64,000 bases of DNA from contig NIVC01000624.1 in NCBI GenBank assembly GCA_002269645.1, forward strand, positions 1 through 64,000, given 5' to 3'. The notes beneath the pieces are model-generated. The model ran no database searches, was not told where the DNA came from, and saw only the letters and a program-made list of their open reading frames with translations. The stretch comes from Macrostomum lignano (Eukaryota). Numbering within the stretch: the first letter of the stretch is position 1; every line of letters begins with the position of its first letter. Of the stretch, positions 9,301 through 17,041 are shown in pieces. The translations under genes were made by a program, and so were the position numbers.

Positions 9301-12300
9301 CTATAATGTCACACAATCAACCATGTCACACAATCAACCATAATGTCACACCATTAACTATAATGTCACACAATCAACCATAATATCTCACAATCAACTA
9401 TAATGTCACACAATCAACCATGTCACACAATCAACCATAATATCACACAGTCAACTATAATGTCACACAATCAACCATGTCACACAATCAACCATAATGT
9501 CACACCATTAACTATAATGTCACACAATCAACCATAATATCTCACAATCAACCATAATGTCACACCATTAACTATAATGTCACACAATCAACCATAATAT
9601 CTCACAATCAACTATAATGTCACACAATCAACCATGTCACACAATCAACCATAATATCACACAGTCAACCATAATGTCACACCATCAACTATAATGTCAC
9701 ACAATCGACCATAATATCAAAAAATCAACTAGAATGTCACAATACCTTTATTTACCTATTGTTAATTTATTACCACATGCAGGATGAGCGACGAGCACAT
9801 TGCTAAGCTGAAGGACTGGGGCCAGCGTATTCGCCAGTGCATGTATCAGTCTAGTATGGCAATCAAAGAGAAGGTGCAAAATAATATTTTGTGTTTTGCA
9901 ATGAAAATACTTTTACTTCAAGATAGCTTGAATGCATATATATATACGAGAATATTTCAATTTTAGGAGACTGAGATTTCCAACAGGAACAGCACAATTC
10001 GTAGCCTACAGGAAGAACTGACGAAGATTAAGGTATGTTTTCTTTATTTTCGAATTTTTTTAGTTCAATACTTCCTAACTTTATTTATCGTTAGGCATGT
10101 AAACTTCACTGAGCTTTGGGGGTTGGTCCTCAAGTGTATTTATTGCACGAGCAGAGCCAAGCCGAGATTCCAATTTAGCCCCAAATTAATGCGACTGCAC
10201 TTGGAATCGAGCCTGGGCCGCTGGCACATCAGAAAGCTGCGCTTGACATCTGAGCTACCCGTAGTTCAATACTAGTAATGTTTGTTAATGTTTATTTTTT
10301 ATACACTTCAGCGCGATCACGAGCTCACCAACATCGGCTATCAAAGCGAGAAGGACGGTCGCACTTCTATTGAGAAGCGAATCAACGGTCTTCATCATCT
10401 GTGCGTCAGTCTCAAGGACAATGCGGTTTCAATGGAATCGGTTATCAAATCTGGTGAGTTATTAATTTAATGGCAAATTGAAAATTTTATTGATCCAGCA
10501 AGAGCCTAATAAACTTATATTTTTGTTCCAATTGTTTCAGTGAAACTGGCCCACGCAAACGCCAAGGAGATTGTGCTGCAGTATCAGACGAGCTTTAATA
10601 AAATAACAACTAGTCTGGCCAAACTGGAGAAAAATCTGATTGACAGCAAGACCAACTGGACTGAGAAATGTGAGCCACTTACAGTTGCACTTTGTTTGCC
10701 AGCTGTAAATGCAATTTTGTCTCAGTTGTGCGATCCTCTTACAATCTGCAATGATTAATTTCAACACTTAAGTTAAATCCAATGGCAAAAATTTTCTTGT
10801 GTCATAATCCCCCTGTTTTTCAAGTTCGCCAGCAGCAAGAGTCCAGCGCCGCTGAAGCGGCCACAGCGCGCGCCTCCTACGAGGAGCTCAAATCGCAGGT
10901 GGGTGTACCTAATTGATTTGTTAACCCAATACATGCAAGAATTATTATTATCATAATATTGATACATTGTCTATCTTATCAAGATGGCTGAAAAAGTCGC
11001 TATGCTGGAGCAGTGCGAGGCCGCTCTAGCGAAATCCGATGCAGCCTGCGAGACGCTACAGGTTCGCGTCAATGAATTGGAGGCTCAGCTGGGTGAGGCG
11101 TGTTACCTGTTTGATTTCGTTATGAATTGAGTGCCTTAGCAACCAGGTAGATTCTAAATCTACATGTATTTCACTCGTCAGAGCAAAGCAACTCCGAGAA
11201 GCAGAATCTCCAGGCAGATCTGGAAGCCAAAAAGCAACAATTGCAATCTACTGAGGAGGCGAACGCCCAGCTGCAGTCTGCTCTGAACGACCTCGGCGAT
11301 AAGAGCGACAGTCTGGCAGTCCAGGTGCGCCAACTCAACGACGCCAAGACGGTCGTCGAGACCGAACTATCCGACGCTATGATTGCTCACCAAAGCCAGG
11401 TTGCCGAGCTGGAACGTCAACTGATGGAGAGTCGCCTAGAGACCGACGAGCTTAAGACCAAGTAAGTTATTCGGCCTTATTGGATTGTTGCTGTTTGTAT
11501 TGTATATTACTTCCCATAATGCTATTTAAATTTCCAGTATTCAGGCGCTTAACCACGACCTAGACGAGGCCAACTGTAACATGAACGAATTATCGGACAA
11601 TATGTGTAAGTTGTCAGTTCACACGCTTCACTTTAACTCAAGTCTTAAACATTCGACACATTTGAAATACATTTCCCTAGTTCTACAAAAATTTCCCGGT
11701 CACCCAAAAGTTCCCGAATTGTCGATTCCCAGGAATTCACAAAAAGCAGCAGTCAAGGGATTCCTGGAAAACACTGTTTAGGGATTCCCCCAAAAACTGT
11801 CAAGGGATTCCCCAAAAGCACTCTCAATGGATTTCCCACCCTTCTGACCCGCAGCCTCGCTGGAGTCGGAAGTTTCCCGCCAGGCTAAGGAGCTGAGCAA
11901 CTTGGCCAGTCAGCGAGACGAGTTCAAAGCTCAGGTAGAGACGCTGGAATTGGCCAAGGCCGAGTGCGAGTCGCAGGGACAGACGGCGGCGGCTGAGATT
12001 GACAGGCTGCGGGATAAACTGCTTGCCGATGAAGAGCTGACCGACTCGCTTAAGGTACTGGGTTTTTAATAACCCCAAGAGTTTCTATCCATCCATCCAT
12101 CCATCCATCCATCCATCTATCTATCTATCTATCCATCTATCTATCTATCTATCTATCCATCTATCTATCTATCTATCTATCTATCTATCTATCTATCTAT
12201 CTATCTATCTATCTATCTATCTATCTATCTATCTATCTATCTATCTATCTATCTATCTATCTATCTATCTATCTATCTATCTATCTATCTATCTATCTAT

Positions 12301-15300: not shown

Positions 15301-17041
15301 CTGGCTAGCCTGATGGAGAAGGCCCGTCAGGTAAGCTGCGTATTATCTTATTACCGATTTGGGGTTGGCGCATTCACTGCCAGCGATGTGGGTTTATAGG
15401 CAGCTGATTCGGCTAAGCCGACATACTACTGATCAGCAGTAGCTAAATGCATAATCAAAGCTCTGCATTCACTCTCCGACCACAGGGCGCCAGCACTAAG
15501 CTAAAGACGAACATCGCCGCTAAAGCCACCGACATCGCCGCCGTTGAGGGCGACTTAGTCGACACCGACGCGCAGAGCCGTCGCAGCCAGTCGCCTCGCC
15601 GTTCGCCGAGGTCTTCGCCTGCTAATAAACCGACAGTGGCCGTTTCGGCCGCCACGACGCCCGCCAGCGCCTCGGCCCGCACGCCGAAGCCGTCGGTGAC
15701 GCCGGGACGGGCCGCCTCCACGCCGGAGCGCAAGCTCAACGTCAAGTCGCCAAGGAGCATCCTGCGCAGGCAGGACCCGCCGTCGGCTAAGCGACGAAAA
15801 GTACATTTTAACGAGCGCGACAATGCCATCGAGTTGCGCAGCGGCGAGGCCAAGTCACCGGCCTCTTCGTCGAGTCGTACGACGAGGCGTCTCGTGTTGA
15901 GCCCTACTTTGGTAAGGCCTGTTCTGTGTTGCTTGATTCTCGATTCTCAGTGCGTCTCTATCCAGTGCTTGCAGTGTCTGTATCCAGTGCTTGCAGTGTC
16001 TGTATCCAGTGCTTGCAGTGTCTCTATCCAGTGCTTGCAGTGTCTCTATCCAGTGCTTGCAGTGTCCGTATCCAGTGCTTGCAGTGTCCGTATCCAGTGC
16101 TTGCAGTGTCTGTATCCAGTGCTTGCAGTGTCTGTATCCAGTGCTTGCAGTGTCCGTATCCAGTGCTTGCAGTGTCTGTATCCAGTGCTTGCAGTGTCTC
16201 TATCCAGTGCTTGCAGTGTCTGTATCCAGTGCTTGCCGTGTCTGTATCCAGTGCTTGCAGTGTCCGTATCCAGTGCTTGCAGTGTCCGTATCCAGTGCTT
16301 GCAGTGTCTGTATCCAGTGCTTGCAGTGTCTGTATCCAGTGCTTGCAGTGTCTCTATCCAGTGCTTGCAGTGTCTGTATCCAGTGCTTGCAGTGTCCGTA
16401 TCCAGTGCTTGCAGTGTCTGTATCCAGTGCTTGCAGTGTCTCTATCCAGTGCTTGCAGTGTCTCTATCCAGTGCTTGCAGTGTCTCTATCCAGTGCTTGC
16501 AGTGTCTGTATCCAGTGCTTGCAGTGTCTCTATCCAGTGCTTGCAGTGTCTCTATCCAGTGCTTGCAGTGTCTCTATCCAGTGCTTGCAGTGTCTCTATC
16601 CAGTGCTTGCAGTGTCTCTATCCAGTGCTTGCAGTGTCTCTATCCAGTGCTTGCAGTGTCTCTATCCAGTGCTTGCAGTGTCTCTATCCAGTGCTTGCAG
16701 TGTCTGTATCCAGTGCTTGCAGTGTCTCTATCCAGTGCTTGCAGTGTCTCTATCCAGTGCTTGCAGTGTCTGTATCCAGTGCTTGCAGTGTCTCTATCCA
16801 GTGCTTGCAGTGTCTCTATCCAGTGCTTGCAGTGTCTCTATCCAGTGCTTGCAGTGTCTCTATCCAGTGCTTGCAGTGTCTCTATCCAGTGCTTGCAGTG
16901 TCTCTATCCAGTGCATGTCCCATATCGCAGGCCCATCCGACAGCCGCCGCTGAGCCTGCCGAAGTCCAGTGCAACGACGAGGACAGCGGCGACGGATTCT
17001 GGCTGGACTCTGATCTGATCTTCGGCCAGAAAAAGGCTTAA
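6380..17041 (+). CDS. SYCP1: Synaptonemal complex transverse filament protein SYCP1-like, 1369 aa, 16 exons
   Basis: Exons 6380-6464, 6565-8242, 9783-9873, 9967-10032, 10312-10453, 10541-10669, 10825-10898, 10984-11092, 11182-11461, 11538-11605, 11855-12054, 13893-13996, 14166-14303, 14922-15330, 15486-15911, 16931-17041; all GT-AG and phase-consistent (4110 nt). The long coiled coil is bounded by ungapped matches to recalled human SYCP1 motifs: [12 protein letters not shown]...KEKETEI...[15 protein letters not shown] vs SKLYKEAEKIKK...RQKESKL...KENNATRHLCNLLKE, and [24 protein letters not shown] vs EMVALMEKHKHQYDKIIEERDSEL. The tail is basic and S/T-P rich. Gene model confidence is higher than the name. 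Confidence 0.78.
6860..7720 (+). repeat. Coding tandem repeat (~132 bp / 44 aa, ~7 diverged copies) in exon 2 of the SYCP1-like gene
   Basis: [44 protein letters not shown]; identical DNA landmarks at 7141 and 7273 are 132 bp apart. Confidence 0.9.
8303..9743. repeat. 20-bp intronic minisatellite
   Basis: Unit AATGTCACACAATCAACCAT with variants; fills intron 2 of the SYCP1-like gene. Confidence 0.95.
10120..10262 (-). mobile_element. tRNA-derived SINE, family copy 1
   Basis: Minus strand reads GGGTAGCTCAGATGTCAAGCG...CCAGGCTCGATTCCAAGTGCAGTCGCATTAATTTGGGGCTAAATTGGAATCTCGGCTTGGCTCTGCTCGTGCAAT. It has box A/B-like motifs and a near-identical second copy at 41916-42035. Confidence 0.8.
12085..12506. 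repeat. (ATCT)n / GATA microsatellite
   Basis: About 105 units; begins with ATCC variants. Confidence 0.98.
12657..13852. repeat. (ATCT)n / GATA microsatellite, variant-rich 5' half and pure 3' half
   Basis: ATCC and ATCATT interruptions to ~13245, then uninterrupted ATCT. Confidence 0.98.
14368..14797. repeat. 33-bp intronic minisatellite
   Basis: Unit GGCGGCATCGATCAAAGGATAGGGCAGAGGGCT, ~13 copies. Confidence 0.95.
15955..16914. repeat. 22-bp intronic minisatellite
   Basis: Unit TATCCAGTGCTTGCAGTGTCTS, ~43 copies, in the last intron of the SYCP1-like gene. Confidence 0.95.

Follow-up and report, generated by a model that had tools for sequence, protein, structure and literature searches.

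SYCP1 forms the transverse filaments of the synaptonemal complex, by which paired chromosomes are zipped to each other in meiosis. It has been recorded throughout Metazoa with the exception of Ecdysozoa, and an 83-residue motif at the N-terminal end of its coiled coil (CM1) is its diagnostic feature over that range (PMC5803294). In the flatworms Schmidtea and Hymenolepis, sycp1 marks prophase I and is in use as a meiotic marker (bioRxiv 10.64898/2026.06.15.732408). Here we analyzed a 64,000-nucleotide stretch of the genome of the flatworm Macrostomum lignano (assembly GCA_002269645.1, contig NIVC01000624.1, positions 1 to 64,000 of the forward strand; hereafter the window), in which an initial annotation had proposed a divergent SYCP1 orthologue among repeat-filled introns. 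Results of our comparative analyses support this proposal, and we conclude that the gene is very probably the M. lignano orthologue of SYCP1. The support comes from intron positions and phases shared with a mammalian SYCP1 gene and from a matching architecture, not from the motif evidence that was put forward originally. The gene adds an unusually divergent member to a known family and does not represent a new kind of system. M. lignano SYCP1 was not named in the literature that we searched, and the public protein models are misnamed.

Exon-intron structure shared with mammalian SYCP1

As shown in Table 1, 14 GT-AG exons on the + strand (9783-17041) were spliced by hand into one open frame of 781 codons. 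The start ATG lies at 9784, the product begins MSDEHIAKL, and the frame is closed by a TAA stop at 17039-17041. The introns of this eukaryotic region are short and of the GT-AG type; tandem arrays have expanded several of them. As a comparator we used SYCP1 from the bat Phyllostomus discolor: its 978-residue product was mapped exactly onto the 82.7-kb gene, which revealed 30 introns and the phase of each. The bat boundaries are in agreement with human and ape isoforms from which entire exons are missing; such isoforms also hint at an exon boundary between human residues 152 and 153, the site of a phase-0 intron in the flatworm gene.

The register of the comparison was fixed beforehand as that of the ungapped CM1 alignment, which in bat numbering is an offset of +101. 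At this offset, position and phase agree between flatworm and bat for 7 of the 13 introns of the flatworm gene (Table 1). Two further introns coincide in position and phase at offset +90, i.e., after one 11-residue indel, which brings the total to nine. Consecutive inter-intron distances of 142, 129, 74, 109, 280, and 68 nt, and later one of 104 nt, are the same to the nucleotide in flatworm and bat. The binomial probability of at least seven matches at the fixed offset of +101 is 1.9e-11; in a control of 2000 shuffles of exon order, each tested at 1100 offsets, the highest count was mostly 2-3 and stayed at or below 5 throughout. Because the exon-intron structure is common to both, the flatworm gene descends from the same ancestral gene as mammalian SYCP1. 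Common descent is settled by this test, independently of the motif matches. Since six consecutive inter-intron distances are equal to the nucleotide, it also follows that over its N-terminal 320 residues the rod is still exactly as long as in mammals, at 13% identity. The rod has held its length and register while its sequence drifted.

The architecture of the product agrees with this assignment. In its tripartite build, a long proline-free rod, predicted to be alpha-helical, leads into a basic C-terminal region that carries S/T-P motifs: residues 1-639 are free of proline, the acidic rod (~600-640 residues) has an isoelectric point (pI) of 4.8, and the tail has a pI of 10.4 and 10 S/T-P motifs. 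The corresponding values for ape SYCP1 are a proline-free stretch at 76-803, a rod pI of 5.4, a tail pI of 9.8, and 5 S/T-P motifs.

Motif matches, homology searches, and rival identities

The proposal had originally been built on an N-terminal and a C-terminal ungapped match, on the spacing between them, and on a short motif in the tail. For the N-terminal match, the human reference was SYCP1 101-206 taken from PDB 6F62, with flatworm residue i placed opposite human residue 100+i without gaps. All the identities that had been listed over 82 residues were recovered (K8L9, I16, K30E31, I41, E56, K74, N77, H81L82C83, and L86K87); in total, the CM1-like region is identical to human SYCP1 at 14 of 82 positions and to the bat protein at 15 of 82. 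No other ungapped placement of the human fragment on the flatworm protein matches as well as this diagonal. It scores 65, whereas shuffled queries gave 40.3 ± 5.4 and in 300 shuffles never reached this value. Taken alone, the CM1 match would be suggestive, not significant. When the ungapped alignment is extended over residues 1-330, 12.7% of positions are identical. Offset 101 gives residues 1-320 a summed BLOSUM62 score of +100, the highest among 658 offsets (mean -153, standard deviation 54; z ~4.7); with CM1 left out, offset 101 ranks fifth of 658. With the introns fixing the register, flatworm L9 is paired with human L109, the buried leucine of the alpha-N-tip head-to-head interface, and mouse L106, which equals human L109, is essential for synapsis (PMC10588951). 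The peripheral human V105 stands opposite flatworm H5 and is not conserved; this valine is also not kept in plants.

The C-terminal match was found as the best diagonal of its region, pairing flatworm residues 570-613 collinearly with human 708-751 and with RxxEL in common, but its score of 51 was reached by 22% of shuffles and is not above chance by itself. The motif starts lie 563 residues apart in the flatworm (7 to 570) vs. 601 in human (107 to 708), close to the ~563 and ~600 given at first. The tail motif KRRKVHF is likewise present (residues 705-711), opposite KKRKMAF of ape and human SYCP1, yet its codons lie at 15789-15809, beyond the end of the span that the initial annotation had assigned to the gene.

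Several results weigh against the assignment to SYCP1. The CM2 and tail motifs are not significant alone. A search with the hidden Markov model of the SCP-1 family, suggested initially as a check, gave no match: Pfam SCP-1 (PF05483) did not match the 781-residue product or its CM1, CM2, and tail pieces at E<=10. The gathering score of this model is 23 bits and ape SYCP1 scores 1530 bits in an identical search; this criterion is one of operational detection, not of descent. Pfam scans of the whole protein and the three pieces returned only sub-threshold coiled-coil noise (Crescentin rod, AAA_13, NET2A, and Fez1). In BLASTP against ape SYCP1 the CM1 alignment came out on top, but only at E=0.38 for this single comparison. 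Alignment by hhalign with a profile of 20 mammalian SYCP1s gave a probability of 1.5% and a wrong register, and phmmer against PDB chains matched no chain of SYCP1. An exhaustive phmmer search with residues 1-385 against 1.84 billion representative proteins yielded, at E<=0.001, only models from the same species and noise from coiled coils but not a single SYCP1, so that the second suggested check, a reciprocal best match to SYCP1, failed as well. Word-indexed searches with the flatworm protein matched only two database models (P0001 and P0002, described below), while the human query retrieved 120 mammalian SYCP1s. Exact look-ups of the 781-residue product, and of the 588- and 1369-residue products that include or consist of the upstream reading frame discussed below, found no match. 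Finally, the gene structure was compared with one mammalian gene only. Judged by sequence similarity alone, the verdict on this gene would be "cannot tell".

These negative results, together with an identity of only 12.7% over 330 aligned residues, are what would be expected if the product were a generic long coiled coil unrelated to SYCP1, in which the motif matches are a chance likeness among heptad-repeat sequences. Such a protein does not account for seven introns that match in position and phase in a pre-specified register and two more after one indel, for six consecutive inter-intron distances equal to the nucleotide, or for the first rank of the CM1 register in the summed substitution score. 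The intron test effectively refutes this explanation, and we consider the chance that it is correct to be minute. A different possibility is that the gene is an SYCP1-derived paralogue or an extra polyploid copy which no longer acts as a transverse filament and has acquired a new function, is expressed somatically, or is decaying. M. lignano is described as a hidden polyploid with duplicated genes (PMC10468722), and the models P0001 and P0002 are copies or alleles that are 93-98% identical. The sequence is moreover unusually divergent for a lophotrochozoan SYCP1, and the 588-residue basic N-terminal part, if real, is unlike other SYCP1 N-termini. Against this, the frame is intact over all 14 exons with consensus splice sites, and the retained rod length and L109 equivalent point to purifying selection on a structural role. 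No better M. lignano SYCP1 candidate appeared in any of the searches, though these could not have listed a distant one. We regard a copy with an altered role as unlikely and retain the gene as the SYCP1 orthologue.

Extent of the gene and its surroundings

The coordinates of the gene and of the features linked to it are collected in Table 1. The span first assigned to the gene (9783-15330) proved too short, as the coding region extends to the stop at 17039-17041 and may begin as far upstream as 6380. The description of the introns as filled with repeats was in turn borne out. Five long tandem arrays lie in introns or spacers, four of them in or directly before the SYCP1 gene, and they make up most of the length of the introns and spacers that contain them; without the arrays, the introns measure ~60-200 bp. 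A putative tRNA-derived element of ~200 bp, suggested by eye on the minus strand in the intron at 10033-10311, was rejected after ARAGORN and Rfam found nothing.

Table 1. Coordinates of the M. lignano SYCP1 candidate gene and associated features in the window. Introns are given as the number of complete residues before the intron and its phase; the bat counterpart is given with the offset at which it coincides.
Feature	Coordinates	Strand	Intron 3' of exon	Bat counterpart (offset)	Remarks
Possible first coding exon	6380..6464	+			ATG 6380 preceded by in-frame stop; GT donor at 6465
Large exon	6565..8242	+			Basic, S/K/R-rich, 44-residue repeats, Q-rich end; ~560 open codons; N-terminal extension or separate gene ending at TAA 8243-8245
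Intron (GTAAGT...CAG) or operon-type spacer	8243..9782	+			Mostly 20-bp array 8303-9741, 73 copies; ~98 bp without array
Exon	9783..9873	+	30, phase 0	absent in mammal	ATG 9784; residues 1-11 equivalent to alpha-N-tip (L9 = human L109); CM1-like motif begins
Exon	9967..10032	+	52, phase 0	153, phase 0 (+101)	CM1-like motif continued, residues 31-52
Exon	10312..10453	+	99, phase 1	200, phase 1 (+101)	CM1-like motif ends; HLC at 10396-10404; 142 nt, equal to bat inter-intron distance
Rod exon	10541..10669	+	142, phase 1	243, phase 1 (+101)	129 nt in both
Rod exon	10825..10898	+	167, phase 0	268, phase 0 (+101)	74 nt in both
Rod exon	10984..11092	+	203, phase 1	304, phase 1 (+101)	109 nt in both; donor CTGG/gtgagg
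Rod exon	11182..11461	+	296, phase 2	397, phase 2 (+101)	280 nt in both
Rod exon	11538..11605	+	319, phase 1	420, phase 1 (+101)	68 nt in both
Rod exon	11855..12054	+	386, phase 0	476, phase 0 (+90)	Exceeds bat equivalent by 33 nt
Intron	12055..13892	+			Filled with (TCTA)n; 4-bp array 12084-13853, ~441 copies; model P0001 breaks off here
Rod exon	13893..13996	+	420, phase 2	510, phase 2 (+90)	104 nt in both
Rod exon	14166..14303	+	466, phase 2	possibly 573, phase 2	GT-AG, continuous frame; next intron holds 33-bp array 14384-14793
Last rod exon	14922..15330	+	603, phase 0		CM2-like C-terminal motif at 15229-15330
Exon	15486..15911	+	745, phase 0		Basic S/T-P-rich tail; KRRKVHF
Intron	15912..16930	+			Filled with 22-bp tandem array 15954-16914, 44 copies
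Last exon and TAA stop	16931..17041	+			Spliced frame
Tandem array	17876..18608				33-bp unit

Upstream of the exon at 9783, a long open reading frame (ORF) occupies two exons, 6380-6464 and 6565-8242, which end in AC. Since the exon at 9783 opens with a single G, the two parts can be joined in frame through a split codon, AC/G. The upstream ORF would then add 588 residues and bring the product to 1369. This part has a pI of 9.6, vs. an acidic N-terminus in ape SYCP1. Within it, a coding tandem repeat at 7056-7471 has a unit of 132 bp (44 residues) in ~3.2 near-identical copies, with more diverged copies around it. Membership of the Cep57 family was considered for the upstream part and rejected: the Cep57 microtubule-binding domain matched at E=1.6e-5 and 25.7 bits vs. 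a cut-off of 31.3, and the match lies in low-complexity repeats. The TAA at 8243-8245 is contained within a consensus GTAAGT donor, and the same bases can thus end a protein or start an intron.

We lean toward one gene that includes the upstream exons. A consensus GTAAGT donor stands exactly at the end of the ORF, in a phase that fits the next exon, and the intervening 1540 bp are filled with repeats like the other introns of the gene, which are likewise short once their repeats are removed. One automatic gene model, P0001, also links both parts, by a different path. A somewhat less probable arrangement, which nevertheless deserves serious weight, is a separate upstream gene at 6380-8245, perhaps the first of an operon, with the SYCP1 gene starting at the acceptor 9782/9783 by spliced-leader trans-splicing and translated from ATG 9784. 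The upstream ORF does end at the TAA, and ATG 9784 sits 1 nt past the acceptor and is paired with human G101, at which the structured core begins. Trans-splicing affects 30% of M. lignano genes, and the spacers of its operons peak near 100 bp after removal of repeats (PMC8629364); the spacer here measures 1537 bp, or ~98 bp after subtraction of the 1439-bp array. The basic character of the N-terminal part, set beside the acidic ape N-terminus, would also suit a separate gene. On the other hand, the ATG at the end of the spliced leader (leader sequence from PMC8629364) is out of frame with ATG 9784.

The two database models, both automatic, were examined alongside the gene, and their exons match the window at 92-100%, as expected if the window is M. 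lignano DNA or a very close copy of it. P0001 is an unnamed automatic gene model of 1659 residues, in which the SYCP1 part is fused to a P-element-transposase-like part; the model matches 6561-7994 at 96%. Its residues 1-777, from another assembly, are P-element-transposase-like (PF21787 and PF21789) and gave no tblastn match anywhere in the window. Therefore, either the copies differ upstream or the model is chimeric. P0002 (UniRef A0A1I8FC96, M. lignano, 553 residues) is named "FHA domain-containing protein". Its C-terminal part matches the + strand at 18857-18931 and 21798-22595, further downstream, and we thus take this part to belong to a separate downstream gene that was fused to SYCP1 in the model. 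In Pfam scans, neither P0002 nor the ORF at 21798-22706 showed an FHA domain.

Two other genes were seen in the vicinity. On the minus strand, a two-exon gene at ~17530-18900 converges on the 3' end of the SYCP1 gene, with a 33-bp array in its intron. Its product of ~178 residues has a hydrophobic stretch and gave no Pfam match. Further downstream, an ORF on the + strand at 24987-25838 matched the neurotransmitter-gated ion-channel ligand-binding domain (PF02931; E=3e-6, 27.2 bits vs. a cut-off of 26) and is probably an exon of a Cys-loop receptor gene.

Proposed working and comparison with known transverse filaments

Mammalian SYCP1 reportedly works through coiled coils with tips that meet head to head and with a DNA-binding end. 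By analogy with it, parallel coiled-coil dimers or tetramers of the flatworm protein would bridge the distance from one homologous axis to the other. Their tips at the N-terminus (residues 1-11, including L9) would join head to head at the midline. DNA at the chromosome axis would be bound by the basic tail, with its KRRK nuclear-localisation-like motif, and by the rod's C-terminal end. The rod is shorter than the mammalian one by 38 residues between the motifs and by 89 residues in proline-free length. Because experimental changes of SYCP1 rod length reportedly altered the spacing, a somewhat narrower central region of the synaptonemal complex, with a width roughly 10% below that of mammals, is a fair prediction for a rod that is ~38-90 residues shorter.

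Splicing of the upstream exons in frame would produce a transverse filament with a 588-residue basic N-terminal extension built on 44-residue repeats, and selection across phyla would have acted on the length of the rod and not on its sequence; for this combined proposal we see the chances as even. If it is true, the extension would sit in the midline of the synaptonemal complex and could replace or supplement separate central-element proteins. As for the rod, its first 320 residues have held exactly the length seen in mammals, along with seven intron positions, from the bilaterian ancestor onward, at ~13% identity. The gene thus offers a clean flatworm-mammal example of a rod conserved in length, not in sequence. 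It shows that intron position and phase can recover the orthology of fast-evolving coiled-coil proteins where profile searches fail. For M. lignano, which serves as a laboratory model in germline and regeneration research, it also supplies a usable candidate marker and RNA interference target for meiotic prophase, which the public models do not provide.

Vertebrate SYCP1 (PF05483; human structures 6F5X and 6F62) is one of the closest described systems. It has in common with the flatworm gene nine intron positions with their phases, the length of the rod over its first 320 residues, a CM1-like motif where the rod begins, including HLC and the counterpart of L109, and an acidic proline-free rod followed by a basic S/T-P-rich tail with a K(K/R)RK-x-x-F motif. 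The flatworm protein differs from it in an identity of only ~13%, which escapes the Pfam model and BLAST, in the reduced motif-to-motif distance and proline-free stretch given above, and in an extreme C-terminus without similarity. The flatworm gene has 13 introns instead of 30, and its product may carry a 588-residue basic N-terminal extension in place of ~100 acidic residues. The SYCP1 proteins of other invertebrates (Hydra, molluscs, annelids, and the flatworms Schmidtea and Hymenolepis) are expected to belong to the same orthologous group. Those orthologues were found by BLAST, whereas the M. lignano protein would escape it.

Among the transverse filaments of other lineages, rod length is reportedly conserved while the sequence drifts. 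Drosophila C(3)G, the SYP proteins of C. elegans, and yeast Zip1 are likewise long coiled-coil rods; their N-termini lie at the midline and their C-termini at the axis. Common descent with SYCP1 is not demonstrable for any of these proteins; the M. lignano gene, in contrast, has it through its intron structure.

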